Below the pieces are notes generated by a model. The model had not been told where the DNA came from. It searched no databases and worked only from the letters and a program-made list of their open reading frames with translations. The translations under genes were made by a program, and so were the position numbers. A stretch of DNA of 64,000 bases from sequence record PV754031.1; one strand, given 5' to 3'. Positions within the stretch are counted from its first letter, which is position 1; the number at the start of each line of letters is the position of its first letter. Below are positions 3 to 49,398 of this stretch, one piece after another.

Positions 3-725
3 AATGAAGCAGAAATTGCTAAGGTAGTTACTTATAAGTCTGGTACTTATAACGACAGCACTAATAACCTATTAATTACTGCTAAACGTGCAGCTAATGG
101 TAGTGTAGCTACGGCTACTGCTGTTGTAGCTATTGCAAATGCGGCTCCTACTGCAACGGTTACCTATCCAGCAGCTCGCCTTCGCTCAGGTGGTAACTTT
201 GGAACCCAAGTACAAAGTCATGTCATTACTTTAACCTCTACTCAGAAACTAAGTGCAGCTCCGGCCATGAATGCGCCTGGCGGTAAGTGGGCTACTGAGG
301 ATTGGAAATCTGACGCCACTGGTAAGGTATGGACACGTGCGTTACTAGTACATGACGATGATCCTAAAGGAACCTACGATTTTAACAGTGTGGTTCTAAA
401 AGGTTTAGCTGGTGTTGAAGCTAATAGTGTAAATGGTGGTACTTACGTACTAGGTGGATTTGTATTCCGCACTCTAAGTGTGGCTGCTTGGCCGAACCGT
501 GAAACTGATATTGGTACTGAAGTAACCAATACTGGTAAACTACGTTGCAGTAACCTATCTAAAGGTTCTACTGGTAGCTTAAACTTCACTTATAAGGCGG
601 ACGATGCAAATCAAGTTGACACCTACACCATCAAGGATGGCAATAAGTGGTATAACTGTGACTCAGCAAACGCTGTATCCAATACCACTGGACTGATGAA
701 AATCGAACTTGAGGAAGTAGTATAA
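3..725 (+). CDS. Virion/tail structural protein, 5'-truncated (phiKZ gp145-like, C-terminal part)
   Basis: Frame is open from base 3 to the stop at 723-725, so the track start at 267 is internal. Thr/Ala/Gly-rich beta-type sequence; stop overlaps the next start (TAATG). Confidence 0.7.
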   Translation, partial: NEAEIAKVVTYKSGTYNDSTNNLLITAKRAANGSVATATAVVAIANAAPTATVTYPAARLRSGGNFGTQVQSHVITLTSTQKLSAAPAMNAPGGKWATEDWKSDATGKVWTRALLVHDDDPKGTYDFNSVVLKGLAGVEANSVNGGTYVLGGFVFRTLSVAAWPNRETDIGTEVTNTGKLRCSNLSKGSTGSLNFTYKADDANQVDTYTIKDGNKWYNCDSANAVSNTTGLMKIELEEVV

Positions 726-3700
726 TGGCTTCTGCATTTGAAGATTATGTAAACGGGGAACTCCCCAAACGGGTATCATCAATTGATGAACCCACTTCTG
801 TAGTTAATGGACACATCCCGGTTTCTACCGGGGTGGGTCTTAATACCACTTTCGTTGATCCTGTTACTATACCTGGATTAAAGGGTGAAGATGGTCAGCC
901 GGGTAAAGATGGCGATCAAGGTCCCCCTGGCCCAGTTGGTCCGGCTATTAACATTATCGCTAATGTTGATCTAGCAACATTCGAACAAGATATTAAACCA
1001 TTAGATACGCATAATGTCGGTGATGCTTGGTTCGTTGAAGATCGGCTATGGGTATGGGAATCACCGCTAGGTAATGAAGATCCCCCTGTAAAAGGTCGTT
1101 GGGTTGAAACAGGTTCACTTCGTGGTCCAGATGGTACTGGTCTGGTTATCCGTGGTCGTTGGCCTAATAACTTAGAATTACCTAAGACTGAAAGTAATAA
1201 ACCTGGAGATGCTTACTCATGGAATAATCAACTCTGGGCGTGGATGCTTATCTCAGGTAATAATCCGCCAGAGAATCCAACTATTGATGACTATGATTGG
1301 TTCCCAGTTACACCACAGGGTGAACGTGGACCTGAGGGCCCTGAGGGTCCGCAAGGTAAAGATGGTGAAATTGGTCCTGAAGGTCCTCAGGGTGAACCAG
1401 CAATGCCGTTTACCATTAAGGATTCGCTACCATCACCAGCTGATTTACCTGATCCATCTGTAGCTAAAGAATCAGAAGCATACTTAGTTACTATGGAAGC
1501 TGGTAAACCAGAACATCTATTCATCTTTGTAAAAGGGGCATGGTCAGACCTAGGTACTTTCCAAGGCCCTGAGGGCCCACAAGGTAAACCAGGTAATACA
1601 GGTGATCCGGGTCCCGATGGTAAACAAGGTGAACCTGGTCCACAAGGTCGTAACTTAGAAGTAGTTAAAGCAGTTGAAACTGCTGATGATCTATTAACCA
1701 CCACTGGTGTAGAACAATACCAAGGTGTTTCAGTACGTTCCACCAATACGGTTTATGTACTGACTGGCCAAGATCCGACTGTTGATATCTCATGGACAGC
1801 CATGGGTTCATTCCGTGGCCCGCAGGGCCCTGAAGGTCCGCAAGGTGAAGATGGCGAACAAGGTCTACCTGGTGAACCAGGGGCACAAGGTAAATCGGCT
1901 TTCCAAGTAGCATTGGACAATGGCTTCACTGGTACTGAGGGTGAATGGTTAATCAGTCTACATGGTAAGAACGTAGTTATTACTGGTGCTGTTGCCAATG
2001 AGGCAGCCCTGCCGGCAGATGCTCCTGATCAGGCAGCGTACTTCACACAAGACACATCTACCTTATTTGTTAAGATAGATGGTAATTGGGTAAATAGTGG
2101 TACACATCGAGGTCCTAAAGGTGAAGATGGCGCACCTGGTAAAGACGGTGATCAGGGACCAGAAGGACCCGAGGGACCAGAAGGCCCACAAGGTCCCGCT
2201 GGTGAACCTATCCAGATCATCGCAGCGATTGACACTCCTGAAGATACCCCACCAGAAGCACTTGCCGATAACCAATGGAAAGCATATACTGTTAAGTCCA
2301 CGGGCGAAGTATTTGTTAACATGGACGGTAGTCGCTGGACTAGCATTGGTATTATGGCAGGTCCGCAAGGTAAACCGGGTGAAGGTTTAAACATTAAAGG
2401 TGTTTTAACCGATGCTTCACAACTACCAAAGAAAGACACTGATCCTGACTTAGTAACTGGTGATTCATACTGGGTTGAAACTAACGAAGGTACAATGCTC
2501 TATACTTACCAAGGTCAGGAAATTGATGGCTATATCGGCCCAATTAATCTAAATGGTGAGCAGGGTATCCAGGGTGTCGAAGGCCCACAAGGTCCTGAAG
2601 GTAAACAAGGTGGTGGTCTATTAATTATCTATGTTGGTGATGATGCTGGTAAACCAGTAGCATCTGCTGATAACGTAGGTAAAGGTATTGCCATTCGCAC
2701 CAATACTGAAGGACAAGTAGAAGTATTTGTAAGTATCGATACTGAAGGTACATTTACTTGGGAAAGCCTAGGTGTCTTAGCCATGGGTCCGCAGGGTCCT
2801 GAAGGTCCTGAGGGCAAACAAGGTGTTCCAGGTATCCCTGGTAAAACCGGTCAGAAAGGTGAACGTGGATCCTCTTGGGTAATTCTACCTGAAGGTCAAA
2901 CTGCACCCACTTCTATCGATGGTAATCGTGGTGACTGGTGTATCGACAAAACTGGTACCGTTTGGTATAAAGATGCTAACTGGGTTGTATTCTACAAATT
3001 AATGTCAGTTCCAGTTAGTGAAGTCGATCCAGAAGATGTCGATAAGAAAATGGTTCGGTACAAACTCGGTTGGACTGAACTACCTGTTGATGAGGTGGTA
3101 GATGCTGAAGTAGGTGTCTTCTATGGTCGCCGTAAAGCAACCGCTGACGGGGCTGTTGAATGGACTGCTATTGAATTACCAACACCTGCCATTGATGCTG
3201 TACCTAGTCCAGTTGTTAATGCACAATACGTTCGTAAAGGTATTGCAGGGGGTGAAACTGAATGGGCTACCATTACATTCCCAGAAATTCCTTCAGATGT
3301 AGTACGCGATACTGCACAAGCTACTAAGCCTCAAGGTCGTGTAGCTGGTAACTGGGTTGATGTAGCACCTCTGCAAACCGATGATACTCTAATGGGTATG
3401 CAAAATGGTGAATGGGTAGCTGTACCAGCCGCAGTTATTGGTGAAGTACCTAGTGAAGGTGCTAATGGCACTAACTATGTACGTGAGAAAACAGCTAGTG
3501 GTTCTAAATGGACACCTGTAACTATTATAGTTGATCAAGCTGATGCTACTAGTGGACAACTATTCCTACGTAATGCTGCGGCTAAATCATGGACTCTATT
3601 CCAAGGGCCGAATAATGATGTAACCGCTGATGGTGATTGGCTACGTAGCCGTACTGGTACTAATATTACTTGGAAGAAGCTAGATAAATCATTCGATGCA

Positions 3701-4006
3701 TATAGCCTAAAATCAAGTACATTCACTGGTACAGCTTTAACTCTAACACCAGCTAACCAACAGTGCTATAGGGTTCAAACTGCTGCTAACCAAACCATTA
3801 CACTAGAGAATGGACCTGTTGATCGTATGATCACAGCTGTTCTTGTATTGCTTGGTAAGGTAGCTATGCCAACACTTTCTAGTGCAGTGTTACAATGGAA
3901 CAATGGTACTCCAGTAATAGTAGATGACCTAGGTGATACTAAAACAGTTCTTACCCTCTTATGGGATGGTACTAACTGGATAGTTTCCAAAGGTGCTGTT
4001 ATTTAA
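725..4006 (+). CDS. Collagen-like tail fibre / virion protein (phiKZ gp146-like, 1093 aa)
   Basis: About nine Gly-X-Y tracts alternate with ~60-aa Trp-containing modules; YxR...W repeats and a LLWDGTNW C-terminal motif typical of fibre proteins. Confidence 0.85.
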   Translation: MASAFEDYVNGELPKRVSSIDEPTSVVNGHIPVSTGVGLNTTFVDPVTIPGLKGEDGQPGKDGDQGPPGPVGPAINIIANVDLATFEQDIKPLDTHNVGDAWFVEDRLWVWESPLGNEDPPVKGRWVETGSLRGPDGTGLVIRGRWPNNLELPKTESNKPGDAYSWNNQLWAWMLISGNNPPENPTIDDYDWFPVTPQGERGPEGPEGPQGKDGEIGPEGPQGEPAMPFTIKDSLPSPADLPDPSVAKESEAYLVTMEAGKPEHLFIFVKGAWSDLGTFQGPEGPQGKPGNTGDPGPDGKQGEPGPQGRNLEVVKAVETADDLLTTTGVEQYQGVSVRSTNTVYVLTGQDPTVDISWTAMGSFRGPQGPEGPQGEDGEQGLPGEPGAQGKSAFQVALDNGFTGTEGEWLISLHGKNVVITGAVANEAALPADAPDQAAYFTQDTSTLFVKIDGNWVNSGTHRGPKGEDGAPGKDGDQGPEGPEGPEGPQGPAGEPIQIIAAIDTPEDTPPEALADNQWKAYTVKSTGEVFVNMDGSRWTSIGIMAGPQGKPGEGLNIKGVLTDASQLPKKDTDPDLVTGDSYWVETNEGTMLYTYQGQEIDGYIGPINLNGEQGIQGVEGPQGPEGKQGGGLLIIYVGDDAGKPVASADNVGKGIAIRTNTEGQVEVFVSIDTEGTFTWESLGVLAMGPQGPEGPEGKQGVPGIPGKTGQKGERGSSWVILPEGQTAPTSIDGNRGDWCIDKTGTVWYKDANWVVFYKLMSVPVSEVDPEDVDKKMVRYKLGWTELPVDEVVDAEVGVFYGRRKATADGAVEWTAIELPTPAIDAVPSPVVNAQYVRKGIAGGETEWATITFPEIPSDVVRDTAQATKPQGRVAGNWVDVAPLQTDDTLMGMQNGEWVAVPAAVIGEVPSEGANGTNYVREKTASGSKWTPVTIIVDQADATSGQLFLRNAAAKSWTLFQGPNNDVTADGDWLRSRTGTNITWKKLDKSFDAYSLKSSTFTGTALTLTPANQQCYRVQTAANQTITLENGPVDRMITAVLVLLGKVAMPTLSSAVLQWNNGTPVIVDDLGDTKTVLTLLWDGTNWIVSKGAVI
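875..2870 (+). repeat. Interrupted collagen (Gly-X-Y) repeats
   Basis: Repeated GPEGPQG/GEPG/GKDG triplets encoded by recurring ggtcctgaaggt/ccgcaaggtaaa words; boundaries approximate. Confidence 0.9.
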
Positions 4007-6831: not shown

Positions 6832-8271
6832 TTAAGCTTTTGCTTTAGCTAGTTCAAGAGGTACAATTTTAGCTTTTTCTTCGTCAGTCATCCAGTATGG
6901 TTTATATTCACTTTTACGCATGCGTAGTAGGTCATACGTGGATAGGAATTTTTTATCACTAAATTGTTCGTCTTCTTCGAACATCCAATAGCCACGGGTA
7001 TTATTAAGAATAATATTCCAATCATAACCCATTACTTTAAGATCAGCATATAGTTCGGCTGGAGTTACTACATAATCTCCAAGATTCCAACGTTGGAATT
7101 GAATTAATTGTAGCATTTCAGATTGGATTTCAACAGCTCGTTGTAGAGCAGGGTTATCCATCAATTTCTTACGAACAGTGGTTCGGCTTAGTTTGATATC
7201 AGGACATAGCTCAACGAAGTAGTTAATGTTATTACCACCAATCCCCCAATCATTTTCACGGCAATAATGGAATTCCGATAGTGATGGAAGAATACCTTCA
7301 GTCTGTGAAACAATGAGATGGAATGGTAGACCAGTAATTCCACCTTTACCACGTAAGTTAATAACTTCTAGAATACGTAGATCTGTATCGCCTTCAATAG
7401 CAGTTGAATTGTCAATTGGATATAAAGGCATTTTTTCTTTATTGACTAACGGTTTATTAGATTCAATAGAAAACACATTATTCGGCAGAGAGTAGAAACC
7501 ACCTGATACCCCTTTAAGAACCGTATCCTTCTTCATATGCGATAGATTACGTTTATCAGTAGGGTACATCTCAATTTGAATAATATCTCCAACGTGTGCA
7601 GTGAGAATCATGTATGTACTGGTTTTAGCACAGATCTGCGGCAGTTGGTTAAATAACTGATTCTTGGCTTTACCATTAGTCATCGCATCAGTGTTTACTT
7701 TAGAATCACCGATAGCATTTTTAGCATACATTTCAGACACAGCTGAGACAATGAACTTTGAGAAACTATCAATGAATCCACCAGTTGGGTACAGTGCTTT
7801 CTTATTGTTACCATTCACATCAAGAAATGGGGTAGTGCGTAGATAATCTTTTTCAGCTTTCTCTTTTTCAGATAATGCATCTCGGAAGATTTTGAACCAC
7901 TCATCTCCAGTATAACGAGATAAGTCAGTAAACATGTATTGCTCATCATTTTCCCAATCGATAGCAGCTAGCTCAGGATAAGCTTGTGCTAAAGATGTAA
8001 ATCGAGCACCTGGGTTTAATGTACCTTCTGTATCGTAAGTCATTGCATGTGCACCGGGGAAAGCACGGCGCATCATTGCCATGAGGTAGATACCTAATGC
8101 AGTTTTAAAATTGTTAGGTCGTGAAGCAATACCAGTTAGTGATCCCATACCACCATTTAGAATCATTTCACCATGCTTACCTTGTTCATACTTACCAGTT
8201 GAAATGTCCATAAGGCATCCGATGTTAAGAGCCGGTCGGAAAGCTGGACGTTCGAAATGTTTACCAAACAT
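6832..8271 (-). CDS. uvsX: UvsX/RecA-like recombinase (phiKZ gp152-like)
   Basis: P-loop variant GIASRPNNFKT, YDTEGT, Walker B FIDSFS, LTAHV; 479 aa; syntenic position. Confidence 0.85.
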   Translation of the reverse strand: MFGKHFERPAFRPALNIGCLMDISTGKYEQGKHGEMILNGGMGSLTGIASRPNNFKTALGIYLMAMMRRAFPGAHAMTYDTEGTLNPGARFTSLAQAYPELAAIDWENDEQYMFTDLSRYTGDEWFKIFRDALSEKEKAEKDYLRTTPFLDVNGNNKKALYPTGGFIDSFSKFIVSAVSEMYAKNAIGDSKVNTDAMTNGKAKNQLFNQLPQICAKTSTYMILTAHVGDIIQIEMYPTDKRNLSHMKKDTVLKGVSGGFYSLPNNVFSIESNKPLVNKEKMPLYPIDNSTAIEGDTDLRILEVINLRGKGGITGLPFHLIVSQTEGILPSLSEFHYCRENDWGIGGNNINYFVELCPDIKLSRTTVRKKLMDNPALQRAVEIQSEMLQLIQFQRWNLGDYVVTPAELYADLKVMGYDWNIILNNTRGYWMFEEDEQFSDKKFLSTYDLLRMRKSEYKPYWMTDEEKAKIVPLELAKAKA

Positions 8272-14497: not shown

Positions 14498-14898
14498 GCG
14501 AATTCTGTTATATCTACCCACCTATGAAAGTAATTGACACGTCTAAAGCAACTGGACGTAAGTTTGATATTGACTCAACTTATCTTAATGCGCACATTAT
14601 CGTTGAAGATCCTAATTATACTGATAATGATAATTCAGATAGTCCATTTATAGTAAATTTACCAGCTACTGCCTATGATACTAAAAAAGGTAAATATGTA
14701 TTTACTATTGCCAATAAGACAAATGGATTATTGGTGATTCGTGCTTATGGTAATCGTTTAGTTGGTAACCGTGTATTCAAAGTTGACTGTCAATTAAACA
14801 AAGGTGAGGCATGTGAATATAGAACGGTTTATGATTCATTAGAAAATGAATTATACTGGTCTATCGAAGGACGTGTAATGACGGATGTACAGGAGTAA
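14494..14898 (+). CDS. Hypothetical beta-rich protein
   Basis: ATGA overlap with the upstream stop favours start 14494; resembles the C-terminal domain of the upstream protein. Confidence 0.7.
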   Translation: MSEFCYIYPPMKVIDTSKATGRKFDIDSTYLNAHIIVEDPNYTDNDNSDSPFIVNLPATAYDTKKGKYVFTIANKTNGLLVIRAYGNRLVGNRVFKVDCQLNKGEACEYRTVYDSLENELYWSIEGRVMTDVQE

Positions 14899-14901
14899 AT
14901 C

Positions 14902-15375
14902 ATGGCAGATACATCAAAATGTGATAATTTCATTCCTGGTGCATTTTACACAACAATAAATAAATATCCATTAAAAATGAAACACCCTCTTTATGGAGAT
15001 GATGTTATTTATAATCTGTTAGATGTTAAAGATTATTTTGATACTAACATTATCTTTAAAGAAGAAGATGGATATGTATCATCACCAACAACACCTACAT
15101 TTATTGGCACTGTTATTAAATATAATACATCATTGCCAAATGGATTTACTTTCGTATTGAGTTTCTATGAAAAAGATCCTATTAATGGCAAAGAGACTAG
15201 GGACTCATTAAGTTTTTGGGCACAAGACAAAGATGGTAAATTAGTTATACCTAGAGGTTTTCCATTTGAAGATGCTTCTGTGCGCGGTACGGTTGGACAA
15301 CGATTTATATTAGTCAGACCTAATGGCCAAACAACTGGTGATTATATTTGGGTTTGTCCTGGTCAAGCATTTTAA
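14902..15375 (+). CDS. Hypothetical protein
   Basis: 157-aa ORF, AGGAG RBS. Confidence 0.75.
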   Translation: MADTSKCDNFIPGAFYTTINKYPLKMKHPLYGDDVIYNLLDVKDYFDTNIIFKEEDGYVSSPTTPTFIGTVIKYNTSLPNGFTFVLSFYEKDPINGKETRDSLSFWAQDKDGKLVIPRGFPFEDASVRGTVGQRFILVRPNGQTTGDYIWVCPGQAF

Positions 15376-15380
15376 TTTAA

Positions 15381-15408
15381 AGCGGATCTGCTTTAAAGTG
15401 GATCCGCT
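15381..15408 (+). terminator. Intrinsic terminator
   Basis: AGCGGATC...GATCCGCT followed by ATTATTT. Confidence 0.7.
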
Positions 15409-15449
15409 ATTATTTCGTCTTAAAGTAACTATAGTGCTCAATTGAATGA

Positions 15450-16109
<660 letters not shown>

Positions 16110-16144
16110 CAACCTTATGAACTTTAATACTCCGGAGTTTTAAA

Positions 16145-17713
16145 ATGGCTAAGAAAAAAACAGTTCCCGCAATGGATTTCTTTGCAAGTCTTGAGCGCGT
16201 TTCTGATGCTGAAGATAAGAATGTCAATCTTGATGTTGGTAAAGAATTACCAGAACAATTAAAAGATGATGAAGATGGTAAAGTAAATCCATGTGATGAA
16301 GTTACCAATGTCGTTACCAATACCCCAATTGACGTATGCAAAGGTCCAGATGTTGATGGAACTGCTGATAAGATCAATGATAAGAAGATTCATGTTAGTC
16401 AAGGGCTAAAAGAATTCCAAGTAGCTAAAGGTGATCGTGTTGAAAACGAAATCACTGAAACAGCTGATGAAATGATCACTAAAGTAAGTGATACTAAAGA
16501 TCTTAATGTTAGTACCAAAAAACCACACCAAATTGCAGATGTCCCATCGAATGAAGACATTTCTATTATGGAAGCCAATGAGACTGAGCAGCTAGACCAT
16601 GGCTATGATGCCACCGCACTACTGGAAACTACTGAAGATATCATCACTGGTGAACTAGATGATCATCTAGAATCATTATCAGTTGAAATGTTTACAATTG
16701 TAAATGAACTGACTAAAGTAGAATCTGTTCAAACTGCATTAGAAAACTATATTGGTTTAGTTAGTAACCGCCATCATCGCGGGCATGATGTCGATCATGA
16801 TCTAGCTAAAGCTATTAGCATCGCGCTAGAGTCATTTGACTATAAATATTTTAATAACACTGTGCCATCAATGGAATCCTTTATATCACCGCTAACTCGG
16901 CCTAAAGCTTCTATTGAAGTATTAGATAATCTACAAGCTAAAGCAAAAGAAGTATCTACTGTTGCATTAGATTTCATTAAGAAGCTAATTCGCATTGTTG
17001 TAGAAACTTATCAACGTATTCGCCAGAATGTCAGTAATCAAATAGAACGCGTTAATAAGATCATGAAACGCGTTAAAGAGAATGAACTACCCGATGAAGT
17101 TCGTACTATCGCAATTCCACGCGATCTGATTCTAGGTGACACTGGTGAGAGTTGGGTTGGTGTAGACCCTGTTCAGGGGGTTACTGTAATCCGTAATCTA
17201 TTTGACAGCATTGAAAAGAATGGACTGCGTGCTCTTAAAGCAGCCTTAGCTGGAAAAACAACTGATGATAAAGCACTGGCTTTAGCTAAAGGTATGTTTG
17301 GAACAGCTACCAAAATTAATGCTAATGGTGTCCGATATGCTAGCCCGGTTGTACCCGGTAATCGTGTTTATACCTTTGGTAAAGACAAAGCTGCGGTAGA
17401 CTTCTCCATTCTTGATGCACCGGGTAAACCCAACTATGGAATTACTGTTGAACTATTAGTTGATAAGAATGTTGTTATGGCTCAGCTAAAAGCAGTTCAT
17501 AACCTCCTAAATCATCTAAATAATATTCGCGGTATCTCTAAAGAGTCAACTGCTGAAATCATTGCACAGATGACTGATAAAGAAGCAACCAATGTTGGTA
17601 AGGCTTATCTAACTGGCACCACTGAAGCTAGTAATGATCTGTTTAAATGTGTGATGATCTGGATCACCGTACTTGAGAAACTAGTTGATAGTGAAATCAA
17701 GGAAACTGAATAG
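16145..17713 (+). CDS. Inner head / inner-body protein (phiKZ gp162-like)
   Basis: 522 aa; long acidic propeptide with SVE, IALE, PSME protease-type motifs followed by a helical core. Confidence 0.75.
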   Translation: MAKKKTVPAMDFFASLERVSDAEDKNVNLDVGKELPEQLKDDEDGKVNPCDEVTNVVTNTPIDVCKGPDVDGTADKINDKKIHVSQGLKEFQVAKGDRVENEITETADEMITKVSDTKDLNVSTKKPHQIADVPSNEDISIMEANETEQLDHGYDATALLETTEDIITGELDDHLESLSVEMFTIVNELTKVESVQTALENYIGLVSNRHHRGHDVDHDLAKAISIALESFDYKYFNNTVPSMESFISPLTRPKASIEVLDNLQAKAKEVSTVALDFIKKLIRIVVETYQRIRQNVSNQIERVNKIMKRVKENELPDEVRTIAIPRDLILGDTGESWVGVDPVQGVTVIRNLFDSIEKNGLRALKAALAGKTTDDKALALAKGMFGTATKINANGVRYASPVVPGNRVYTFGKDKAAVDFSILDAPGKPNYGITVELLVDKNVVMAQLKAVHNLLNHLNNIRGISKESTAEIIAQMTDKEATNVGKAYLTGTTEASNDLFKCVMIWITVLEKLVDSEIKETE

Positions 17714-22912: not shown

Positions 22913-22940
22913 ACTAAAAAATAATTAAGATATATATTAC
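22913..22940 (+). promoter_or_regulatory. phiKZ-type early promoter (vRNAP)
   Basis: A-tract..TTAAGATA-TATATTAC (octamer at 22933-22940), upstream of the ORF at 22975. Confidence 0.8.
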
Positions 22941-23429: not shown

Positions 23430-23456
23430 CTAAAAAAAGTTTAAGATCTATATTAC
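23430..23456 (+). promoter_or_regulatory. phiKZ-type early promoter
   Basis: AAAAAAAGTTTAAGATC-TATATTAC (octamer at 23449-23456). Confidence 0.8.
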
Positions 23457-29432: not shown

Positions 29433-30245
29433 TTAACGCATGAAGCCAGGGCGCCTATGTTTAACTGGTGAAATATCCCAGCCAAGACTTTTCGCTAGAT
29501 CTGTCACATTGGTGATATCAGAACATTCAAAACCCATGTTAATTTGACGTTCACGTTCACGCTGTACCTGATATAGAGTATCAGGCGTGATAACCATTAA
29601 TTGATCTTCATAGTTCTCTAATGCAGGGGAATTCCATTTATTAGCACCGTAAATACCACCTTCCCCAACCATATCCCAAGTTGAAATCTCACGGGTATAT
29701 TTGATACCGCGCATAGGATCATCTTGAGTTATTGACCTTACCGAGCAATAAGTATTCTGAGAAGGATTGGTAATAGATGCTTCGAAGTACTTACCAAAAG
29801 GACCGTATGGTTTGCATTTGCCAAGTACTAGTTTAATAGGAAGACCTTTCTCATCTGTAGAATCAACCAGAATAAGTTCCTTAATATGCGCACACACACG
29901 ATCATCATCGATTTGACGAATTCGCATTAGGTACTCATGTTCATTCATCCGTGTGCCATCTTTACGATAGGGTTCAGGGTGTTTGTATTCCATGAATAGA
30001 ACACCCTTTTTAACACGGCGCATTAAAGGTGAGTCTGGATTAAACATAGATACGCCGGATGCCATTTCATAGAACATACCAGCTGAATTTCGGGTACCAT
30101 AAGCTCCTAGTGGAGTTAGATAGTAACCATCCGCATCAGGTACTAATACACCTTTTTTATTAGTACCGGCTAACATATCACTGCCGATAACTACTTGGTT
30201 ATTAGTACGCTGTTGCAAACCAGAAAAATTAGAATATGGTTGCAT
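29433..30245 (-). CDS. Prohead (head maturation) serine protease (phiKZ gp175-like)
   Basis: 270 aa; EYKHP (His89) and YCSVRS (Ser168); ALE ending at residue 210 matches the recalled C-terminal autocleavage site. Confidence 0.88.
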   Translation of the reverse strand: MQPYSNFSGLQQRTNNQVVIGSDMLAGTNKKGVLVPDADGYYLTPLGAYGTRNSAGMFYEMASGVSMFNPDSPLMRRVKKGVLFMEYKHPEPYRKDGTRMNEHEYLMRIRQIDDDRVCAHIKELILVDSTDEKGLPIKLVLGKCKPYGPFGKYFEASITNPSQNTYCSVRSITQDDPMRGIKYTREISTWDMVGEGGIYGANKWNSPALENYEDQLMVITPDTLYQVQRERERQINMGFECSDITNVTDLAKSLGWDISPVKHRRPGFMR

Positions 30246-38970: not shown

Positions 38971-47731
<8,761 letters not shown>

Positions 47732-47789: not shown

Positions 47790-48095
47790 ATGTCTCTACT
47801 TAAAAAGATCGGTCTAGCTTTAATTGGATCAGAAGGACGTAAGGAAGTTTTTGAACAAGAATTAACTAAACTATCAAATTCTAATGCAGTTATTGATCAA
47901 ATGGTGATTAATTTACTGGGTAGTAAGAAGAAGTTAGATGACTTCCTAATTAAAGCTGAAGAAATTGATAATAAGAAACTAGGCTTCATTAAAAATCGAG
48001 CCGAACTTATTAAACTAGTCAAATCTAAATATTCACAAGACCCTCGGGTTGCCGATGTAGTAGTGTCACTTTACATTGGTGGTTTCATTTATTGA
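47790..48095 (+). CDS. Hypothetical basic helical protein
   Basis: 101-aa ORF with AGGT RBS. Confidence 0.7.
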   Translation: MSLLKKIGLALIGSEGRKEVFEQELTKLSNSNAVIDQMVINLLGSKKKLDDFLIKAEEIDNKKLGFIKNRAELIKLVKSKYSQDPRVADVVVSLYIGGFIY

Positions 48096-48102
48096 GGTAA
48101 GT

Positions 48103-48795
48103 ATGTCTAAACCTAATCTTGAGTGGTTAGCTTCCTTAGAAAGTAAAGAAGCTAAGAGTACAGTAGATTCTTCCGATATGGATAATGATCAAAAGGAAGG
48201 TAGCGATAAGTCTCAACAAGATGAAGCTACTGAACCTGAGAAGAAAATTACTGCAACTGATGTACAAATTGCAATTGAAGAATATGCGCGTATCCGTGCA
48301 TTAACCACTACTAAAGATCTTCCAACTGACCCTGAACCAGGTGATACTTATCATGTAAATGGGGTAGATTGGATTTATCAAGAAGATGGTGGATGGGTAA
48401 CTATGCAAGGTATTTATGGCCATGAACATTTTGATGAAAATGGTCTAAATATTGAAGCAAGTGGTATTGATCAGAAATCAGGTGCAACTAAACGTTATGT
48501 GGTAACTGGTTATAATGCTCAGACTAACCCAGCTGCTATGCCTGGTGATAATCTGACTGAATGTGTTATCCTAATGCAGAATGGACTTGTTCCAGAAGTT
48601 GGTGTAAATGGCCTAACTGCTGACTGTCTACTTAAAATCGTTAAAGATTTATTTGAAGGTTATCAAGCAGGCCCATTTGCATGTGAAGAGAATCAGGTAG
48701 TGATTAATTCAATGGACCGTGCTCTTAGTGCAATTCATCAACGCCTCGTAAGACGTAAAGAACAAGGTACTGAAGGTACCTATAGTGGTAATTGA
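48103..48795 (+). CDS. tad1: Tad1-family nucleotide-signal sponge domain fused to an acidic propeptide (phiKZ gp184-like)
   Basis: The C-terminal ~125 aa match Tad1 motifs: GA..Y, xQNG..EVGVNG, LL.IV.D...YQAGPF..EN, R-x3-R and GT. ATG 48103 follows GAGGT. Confidence 0.75.
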   Translation: MSKPNLEWLASLESKEAKSTVDSSDMDNDQKEGSDKSQQDEATEPEKKITATDVQIAIEEYARIRALTTTKDLPTDPEPGDTYHVNGVDWIYQEDGGWVTMQGIYGHEHFDENGLNIEASGIDQKSGATKRYVVTGYNAQTNPAAMPGDNLTECVILMQNGLVPEVGVNGLTADCLLKIVKDLFEGYQAGPFACEENQVVINSMDRALSAIHQRLVRRKEQGTEGTYSGN

Positions 48796-48802
48796 CATAA
48801 AT

Positions 48803-48820
48803 GCCTCCCTTCGGGGAGGC
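48803..48820 (+). terminator. Intrinsic terminator
   Basis: GCCTCCC-TTCG-GGGAGGC then TTTATTT. Confidence 0.85.
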
Positions 48821-48832
48821 TTTATTTCGTAT

Positions 48833-48858
48833 TAAAAAAAATTTGAGATTTATATTAC
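48833..48858 (+). promoter_or_regulatory. phiKZ-type early promoter
   Basis: AAAAAAAATTTGAGATT-TATATTAC (octamer at 48851-48858). Confidence 0.8.
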
Positions 48859-48903: not shown

Positions 48904-49398
48904 ATGAGCGTTGTAATTTTCACTGCCAGACCTATTGGTTATAAAGTTCCTGGCGCTAATTCCACTGTAAATAAGTTTGCACTAAATACAGCTAATGCAC
49001 CTAGTGTATATAGTTCTTCACCAGGATCACCAATTACTGCTCAGGAGAGTAGTTGTATCTATACACTCACTTCAAATCATGAGTTAATCGCTGGGGACAC
49101 CGATAAAGATAACTCCCTAATGAGTTTCAAACTAGTGCTTGCGTATAATAACGATACAGCTAATTATCTAATTAGTACGCAGGTTATTGATAGTATCGAT
49201 AAACTAAAAGGAGTGGAAATTATTAGTGAACTCAGTTTCAGTGTAATTGATACTGGTGCTCATGCGATTCGTCGAGTGAATTCGATCGGTGTATGTGAGG
49301 CTGTTGCCGCTCGATGGTCGCCAGTTGCAATTGTAGCTGATACTAGTGGTGAAGACTTTGGCGATGTATGTGCATCATATATCAAATCGAGTAACTAG
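48904..49398 (+). CDS. Early hypothetical protein
   Basis: 164 aa, GAGGA RBS. Confidence 0.75.
   Translation: MSVVIFTARPIGYKVPGANSTVNKFALNTANAPSVYSSSPGSPITAQESSCIYTLTSNHELIAGDTDKDNSLMSFKLVLAYNNDTANYLISTQVIDSIDKLKGVEIISELSFSVIDTGAHAIRRVNSIGVCEAVAARWSPVAIVADTSGEDFGDVCASYIKSSN

Follow-up and report, generated by a model that had tools for sequence, protein, structure and literature searches.

Introduction

The internal protein IPI* of phage T4 is an anti-defence protein that is made late, steered to the prohead by a short peptide at its N-terminus, relieved of that peptide by the head protease and injected together with the DNA, whereupon it at once disarms a host defence. A course that may be compared with this one, in concept only, is that of gp184 of the jumbo phage phiKZ: sequence and fold of the two proteins are unrelated, and IPI* blocks a restriction enzyme by binding whereas gp184 would sequester small signals. 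Here, we analyse the gene at positions 48103–48795, plus strand, of a 64,000-nucleotide stretch of sequence record PV754031.1 (the whole of this stretch is referred to as the window), and find that it encodes the already published gp184, or Tad1, in a phiKZ-type Pseudomonas aeruginosa jumbo phage. A preliminary description, made by a reader without tools from the letters alone, had taken the product for a Tad1-like immune-signal sponge fused to a head-protease propeptide and delivered with the virion. It was right in all its main steps, and thereby independently recovered a published result, so that nothing in them is new.

The virion role of phiKZ gp184 is well described. The protein is a minor capsid protein at the inner face of the vertices and is cut by the head protease gp175; its visible piece consists mainly of beta strands and slots in between gp86 and the middle of hexamer 1, filling the gap between gp86 and one subunit of the major capsid protein, while most of the chain is invisible (PMC11297242). 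The same study counts five vertex-binding complexes per vertex and gives the gp175 cleavage sites of gp184 as verified. By co-fractionation proteomics gp184 was found as an inner-body interactor, and injection of the C-terminally FLAG-tagged protein was seen by western blot in translation-blocked cells (PMC10449902). In a recent preprint gp184 is called Tad1 and is reported to act against Thoeris and against the cyclic oligonucleotide-based antiphage signalling system (CBASS); its N-terminus is described as wedged in the capsid and its C-terminus as freed by the head protease and injected, and orf184/tad1 was dispensable in transposon sequencing (TnSeq) of phiKZ (bioRxiv 10.1101/2025.11.23.690004). 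PMC13282480, citing Li et al., Nature 2024, likewise has gp184 blocking CBASS and Thoeris, and AntiDefenseFinder gives Tad1 as the one known anti-defence gene of phiKZ (PMC11724313).

Tad1 sponges (CbTad1 of a Clostridium botulinum prophage, 7UAV, 7UAW, 8SMD and 8KBE-H; CmTad1, 8KBB-D; SBSphiJ7 Tad1) are free small proteins, whereas gp184 is longer by 108 residues at its N-terminus and undergoes packaging and proteolytic processing. Whole-domain homology and the topology of a sheet followed by two helices unite them with gp184, and the adenine-stacking, Hoogsteen and phosphate contacts are common to gp184 and CbTad1. Acb2 is also a cyclic-nucleotide sponge, and the Pfam hairpin family PF24729 (Acb2_Tad1_hairpin) is common to Acb2 and the gp184 homologues; it differs in its overall family, in being a free protein and in binding cyclic trinucleotides within a hexamer pocket that gp184 appears to lack. 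Within phiKZ itself, the internal-head and ejected proteins gp93 and gp162 (PF12699, phiKZ_IP) resemble gp184 in an N-terminus woven into the inner face of the capsid, in cleavage by gp175 and in injection of the C-terminal part, and gp162 also has the N-terminal A-S-L-E in common with it. The cargo of these proteins is a helical inner-body fold, whereas that of gp184 is a nucleotide sponge.

Identity of the gene

All 230 residues of the product are identical to chain I, phiKZ gp184, of PDB entry 8Y6V, the capsid of phiKZ at near-atomic resolution, in a phmmer search of the PDB sequences, and phrog_22140 matches the precursor across its full length (E 9e-166). Nucleotide identity of the region is 100% with phage Bobae and 98.6% with phiKZ; the phiKZ counterpart of the gene, PHIKZ184, is annotated 'structural protein'. 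Protein, locus (after gp181–gp183) and published virion role, processing and injection are thus those of phiKZ gp184 without any difference in the protein. The reading frame had been delimited exactly and is genuine; residue numbers in the preliminary description were counted from an alternative TTG start at 48076, which is offered by the listing of open reading frames and would give 239 residues. The gene and the four parts of its product are as follows.

48103–48795, plus strand: coding sequence of the gp184/Tad1 precursor, ATG at 48103, stop codon at 48793–48795, 230 residues
48094–48097, plus strand: Shine-Dalgarno sequence GAGG, 5 nt 5' of the ATG and overlapping the gp183 stop codon, read from the sequence
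48103–48141, plus strand: N-terminal peptide, residues 1–13, ending A-S-L-E, a candidate short propeptide with the first protease motif and putative cleavage
48142–48279, plus strand: acidic disordered linker, residues 14–59, ending A-I-E (residues 57–59), assigned by the predicted local distance difference test (pLDDT), composition and motif alignment
48280–48426, plus strand: capsid-anchor beta module, residues 60–108, ending Y-G-H-E, assigned by superposition on the residues of 8Y6V and recurring in other proteins
48427–48792, plus strand: Tad1 sponge domain, residues 109–230, a four-stranded sheet and a two-helix hairpin, assigned by profile, AlphaFold2 and Foldseek, with PF24729 (Acb2_Tad1_hairpin) in homologues

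No second copy of the anchor or of the Tad1 domain was found within the window.

All 18 named members of the gp184 90% cluster carry the label 'hypothetical protein', despite the literature. Gene fragments of gp184 also occur on several tiny contigs (220–572 bp) labelled Klebsiella pneumoniae, which probably reflect carry-over.

The Tad1 domain and its pocket

Residues 109–230 of gp184 are a true Tad1 domain. A phmmer search of all PDB sequences with the protein as a single query gave E-values of 2e-6 to 4e-6 for six Tad1 chains. A profile of 20 gp184 homologues (A1) matched the Tad1 chains at E 3.7e-12, and a second profile (A3), made from the C-terminal domain and 66 relatives, matched CbTad1 at E 3e-25, aligned to residues 9–124 of the 125-residue chain. 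The likeness of the C-terminal part to Tad1, proposed beforehand, is thus far beyond chance, and the motifs quoted in its favour are all present in the translation, including the C-terminal YQAGPFACEEN and R-x3-R...GTEGT. A tblastn search of annotated phages reached the founding Tad1 of Bacillus phage SBSphiJ7 as well as a record named 'anti-thoeris viral protein', and an exhaustive phmmer search returned 2133 cluster representatives at E ≤1e-3, forming a continuum up to bona fide Tad1 proteins. Scans of the gp184 protein with Pfam, NCBIfam and PADLOC gave no useful match; PF24729 was not scored on gp184 by the local Pfam, and precomputed matches list it for the gp184 homologues.

The predicted structure agrees with the sequence searches. 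AlphaFold2, run on residues 109–230 with A3, returned a model with a pLDDT of 95.6 and a predicted template-modelling score (pTM) of 0.83, in which four strands are followed by helices at domain residues 65–81 and 87–112; this sheet and two-helix layout is the topology described for Tad1. The full-length model was of low confidence (pLDDT 55.8), and when it was submitted to Foldseek, the structural comparison suggested beforehand, Tad1 structures nonetheless took the first 21 places with a probability of 1.0.

The contacts of CbTad1 with glyco-cyclic ADP-ribose (gcADPR), as published (bioRxiv 10.1101/2022.05.03.490397), were transferred to gp184 through HMMER alignments, with the numbering offset checked on R109 and R113. 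The adenine and diphosphate pocket is retained (CbTad1/gp184: F82/Y187, F87/F192, N92/N197, R109/R214, R113/R218, G55/G161 and G120/G225). All of 67 relatives have G161, N197 and R214, and 64 of them have R218. The aromatic-Q, Asn, R-x3-R and GT residues named earlier as pocket residues are therefore confirmed both by the mapping and by the relatives.

In PDB entry 7UAV and in some phage records, Tad1 homologues go under the name 'ABC transporter ATPase'.

Capsid anchor, protease motifs and packaging

The N-terminal half of the precursor is of a different make. Residues 1–69 are predicted to be disordered (AlphaFold2 pLDDT <50), residues 1–70 are acidic, with 16 Asp or Glu against 9 Lys or Arg, and a small three-stranded module is modelled at residues ~70–105. 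The sequence contains ASLE at residues 10–13, AIEE at residues 57–60 and the module LPTDPEPGD..W..GGW at residues 73–98. An acidic N-terminus with S/A/G-x-E motifs, the kind of site attributed to the head protease, had been noted from the letters, and the positions of these motifs proved to be conserved among the 20 homologues: S/A/G-x-E is aligned at residues 11–13 in 18, at residues 57–59 in all 20 and at residues 106–108 in 15, while the flanking residues vary. The protease itself is encoded in the window.

29433–30245, minus strand: gp175 homologue, head maturation protease, its nucleotide sequence 100% identical to that of PHIKZ175, named 'head maturation protease'

The only 34 residues of gp184 that are modelled in the phiKZ capsid map 8Y6V superpose on the small beta module with a template-modelling (TM) score of 0.82 and an rmsd (root-mean-square deviation) equal to 2.0 Å. 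This module is the capsid-binding anchor of gp184. It had instead been likened to the fibre modules of the protein encoded at 725–4006, which is phiKZ gp146, a collagen-repeat protein; that homology was rejected (BLASTP E 1.0, hhalign probability 3.5%), the common part being a short G-D-x-aromatic...W motif.

Packaging and processing in the capsid, as proposed in the preliminary description, are borne out by the presence of the identical protein in the 8Y6V map and by the published gp175 cleavage, and delivery by injection is borne out by the western blot of the C-terminal FLAG tag. According to the record of the 201phi2-1 homologue, mass spectrometry detected that protein in virions. Since five complexes are present at each of 11–12 vertices, we infer a dose of ~55–60 gp184 copies per virion. 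A hypothetical further cut after Glu108 (G-H-E) would detach the Tad1 domain from its anchor; the piece C-terminal of Glu108 has 122 residues, the size of a standalone Tad1.

A protease motif 5' of every N-terminally extended Tad1 was considered as a general rule and rejected, the family-wide enrichment being weak. The claim for the protease motifs is for that reason limited to the phiKZ clade.

Three head proteins that are processed and injected, namely gp153 and gp162 (residues 12–17) and gp184 (residues 11–13), have in common an S-L-E after a short N-terminal peptide, and this common peptide may be a prohead-targeting propeptide. In phiKZ (locus L092) the genes lie at 6990–7904 for gp153 and 14767–16335 for gp162, the latter corresponding to 16145–17713 in the window.

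Architectures of related proteins

At 230 residues gp184 exceeds the standalone size of Tad1 (~120–145 residues), and its fusion to an N-terminal half had been flagged as unusual. Of 166 relatives, 77 stand alone and 67 are extended N-terminally by at least 50 residues, and such extensions track jumbo genomes: in IMG/VR, 6 of 7 contigs of at least 266 kb encode an extended form, against 4 of 73 smaller ones. Related jumbo phages present four architectures between the gp182 homologue and the thymidylate kinase.

phiKZ type: propeptide, anchor and Tad1 at the gp182–thymidylate kinase locus
PhiPA3 gp217 and 201phi2-1 gp280 (the virion protein found by mass spectrometry): propeptide and Tad1 without anchor, at the same locus
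Psa21 gp249 (L004, 2857–3132) and RVTF4 (L006, 3357–3635): propeptide and anchor without Tad1, with the Y-G-H junction as the exact end, at the same locus
Noxifer gp200 (L095, 3468–3872): Tad1 only, 134 residues with neither propeptide nor anchor, in a 278-kb phage, syntenic after the gp181 and gp182 homologues

In phages of the PhiPA3 type the anchor (60–68% identity) is found in the inner-body gene cluster, fused to other cargo that includes a PF12699 internal-head protein. Every case of a fused anchor is flanked by S/A/G-x-E motifs. Two of the anchor-cargo fusions are the following.

PhiPA3 gp096: L007, 2437–3402
HHBS36_1 CDS0319: L008, 2851–5541

The 49-residue capsid anchor is a shuffled module. 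We further propose, tentatively and at rather less than even odds, that it is a portable capsid-docking tag swapped among the cargo of Chimalliviridae, and that a cut at Glu108 frees a 122-residue Tad1 that, in contrast to the Clostridial ones, would not sense cyclic trinucleotides and would probably not form hexamers.

Other fusions of Tad1 were also met. Two metagenomic proteins (P0159, at L009 8001–9455 on a 252-kb contig, and P0072) combine part of a member of the PhiKZ major capsid protein family with a C-terminal Tad1; this part covers profile positions ~135–368 of PF25620 and scores 85 and 37 bits, where the cut-off is 27. The 338-residue gp131 of Burkholderia jumbo phage FLC9 (L096, 2805–3821) has a prolyl isomerase of the cyclophilin type (PF00160, E 2.5e-44) at its N-terminus and a Tad1 domain at its C-terminus.

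Discussion

We put at roughly 0.9 the probability that the product is the precursor form of phiKZ gp184/Tad1 in its full sense, a head-packaged, processed and injected immune-signal sponge. The gene would be transcribed together with the tail and baseplate genes gp182–gp183 and would yield a 230-residue precursor in four parts (peptide 1–13, acidic linker 14–59, anchor 60–108 and Tad1 109–230). As published work on the identical protein has shown, this precursor enters the prohead, where gp175 cuts it at S/A/G-x-E sites and the anchor is wedged at the inner face of each vertex, and the C-terminal part is injected into the next host cell. There, as homology, the pocket residues and the literature suggest, the Tad1 domain would sequester the nucleotide signals of the Thoeris Toll/interleukin-1 receptor (TIR) enzymes and of the CBASS cyclases, and the sequestered signals would never reach their effectors. 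The sponge would act before the phage has proteins of its own, against small molecules that the phage nucleus cannot stop. An immune-signal sponge preloaded in the head would in this way cover the interval before the phage nucleus exists. The anti-Thoeris and anti-CBASS function named in the preliminary description agrees with what the literature reports for phiKZ Tad1 and with the AntiDefenseFinder call.

Several observations weigh against so complete a reading. The Foldseek superpositions obtained with the full-length model were geometrically poor (TM 0.40–0.44, rmsd ~16 Å). The candidate motif at Glu108 is short, and upstream of the domain such motifs are weakly enriched family-wide (41 of 67 against 31 expected, among sequences that are not independent). 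The cleavage sites of gp184 are given through a secondary citation of Thomas et al. 2012, and the ligand and defence data for phiKZ likewise come through secondary citations, phiKZ being absent from the 2023 preprint of Li et al.

The remaining points of this kind concern the ligand. Of the 11 gcADPR contacts of CbTad1, 4 are altered in gp184 (H29 to K130, R57 to V163, R78 to L183 and N122 to Y227), and three of these, H29, R78 and N122, bind the ribose-ribose linkage of gcADPR. The affinity of gp184 for gcADPR is consequently not predictable from its sequence. At the position of H29 a His is found in 41 of the 67 relatives, and at that of R78 an Arg in 53; since some members of the family also lack these linkage contacts, they bear on ligand preference rather than on membership of Tad1. 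The residues for cyclic trinucleotides and the hexamer are not retained either: R90 and T97 of CbTad1, which contact cyclic trinucleotides and keep the hexamer assembled, are replaced by E195 and N202, the hydrophobic pair M102 and W103 at the hexamer interface of CmTad1 by S209 and A210, and K106 by Q213. In the 67 nearest relatives, the R90 position holds Arg in 7 and the T97 position holds Thr in 8. The replacements at E195, N202, S209 and A210 fit the published finding that a phiKZ mutant without nlp1, its tad1 intact, is killed by a CBASS that employs cyclic triadenylate (cAAA) and NucC, and is rescued by Acb2. From the residues we infer that the Tad1 of gp184 would cover dimer-pocket ligands, namely gcADPR and cyclic dinucleotides, and not cyclic trinucleotides.

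Among other explanations, a sponge that works mainly as a newly made late cytoplasmic protein before packaging, in the late stages of infection or in lysis timing, with its injection incidental, seems to us very unlikely. The gene does belong to an operon of structural genes that has terminators on both sides and lacks an early-type motif upstream, and the injected dose estimated above is small, both of which would suit late use. Signalling defences, however, fire early, injection has been shown experimentally, and the lysis-timing option, also raised in the preliminary description, has no evidence behind it. The propeptide and protease-motif architecture is moreover specific to the jumbo-phage homologues, which argues that packaging was selected.

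It is marginally less probable still that gp184 is a structural cement of the vertex, its Tad1-like domain being a relic or having a function within the head, such as contact with DNA or with inner-body proteins, and no role in counter-immunity. Membership of the vertex-binding complex, where gp184 fills the gap between gp86 and the major capsid protein, would be expected of a cement, and the anchor must be useful without Tad1, because Psa21 and RVTF4 retain only the N-terminus and the anchor at the corresponding locus. A cement is harder to reconcile with a gene that the phage can do without at 37 °C and under competition and that is absent from Goslar, or with PhiPA3, 201phi2-1 and Noxifer, which retain the Tad1 domain without the anchor. 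The C-terminal part furthermore leaves the capsid and enters the cell, the pocket residues are strictly retained family-wide, and anti-defence activity has been reported in the literature. That the Tad1 match is a distant likeness of fold, with gp184 binding something other than immune signals, is practically negligible, for although the Pfam, NCBIfam and PADLOC scans were empty and four of eleven CbTad1 contacts differ, the profile match at E 3e-25 runs across the whole domain, the continuum of 2133 relatives reaches bona fide Tad1 including that of SBSphiJ7, and the adenine-stacking and phosphate-binding residues are invariant.

The reading of gp184 as a packaged and injected sponge adds no new system, since the biology has already been described for exactly this protein. 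Annotation could be improved, because the public records still say 'hypothetical'. Three descriptive leads, namely the modularity of the anchor, the candidate cut at Glu108 and the loss of the trinucleotide pocket, could refine the understanding of cargo loading in the heads of jumbo phages and of the range of signals that this Tad1 covers.

Genomic context

The gene is preceded by genes for the tail and followed by a terminator.

45737–47731, plus strand: gp182 homologue, baseplate spacer (role: PMC13250141), the first gene after the terminator at 45689–45716
47790–48095, plus strand: gp183 homologue, 101 residues, phrog_27341, directly 5' of gp184 with a 7-nt gap
48797–48830, plus strand: intrinsic terminator, GC stem at 48803–48820 and a T run, ΔG −16.7 kcal/mol, z −5.2
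48842–48858, plus strand: early-promoter-like motif ending TATATTAC, 45 nt 5' of the next gene, a consensus match only

With gp181 (tail-associated lysin) and gp182 lying 5' of gp184, its placement at the end of a tail-gene cluster was fair, with the correction that gp184 itself is a head-internal protein. The unit gp182–gp184 is flanked by the terminators at 45689–45716 and 48803–48820. The downstream terminator, which had been predicted, is real, and none of 200 shuffles folded as well. The gene has a GC content of 0.37–0.40, similar to that of its neighbours; there is thus no sign of recent acquisition, and that possibility was rejected.

The next early promoter was also foreseen. An early-promoter consensus has been given for phiKZ and 201phi2-1 (PMC7058600), and the extended early-promoter-like pattern TTTRARRNNTATATTAC has two exact matches in the window, at 48842–48858 and 23440–23456, the first of which lies downstream of the gene, as had been described for the promoter. 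The bare 8-mer occurs 8 times in the window where 6.9 would be expected, which is no enrichment, so only the extended pattern is informative. A copy of TTTRARRNNTATATTAC with one mismatch occurs at 22924. The gene that follows, the gp185 homologue at 48904–49398, is 20 codons shorter than in phiKZ (164 against 184 residues), and its alignment to phiKZ is 60 nt shorter and falls into two pieces.

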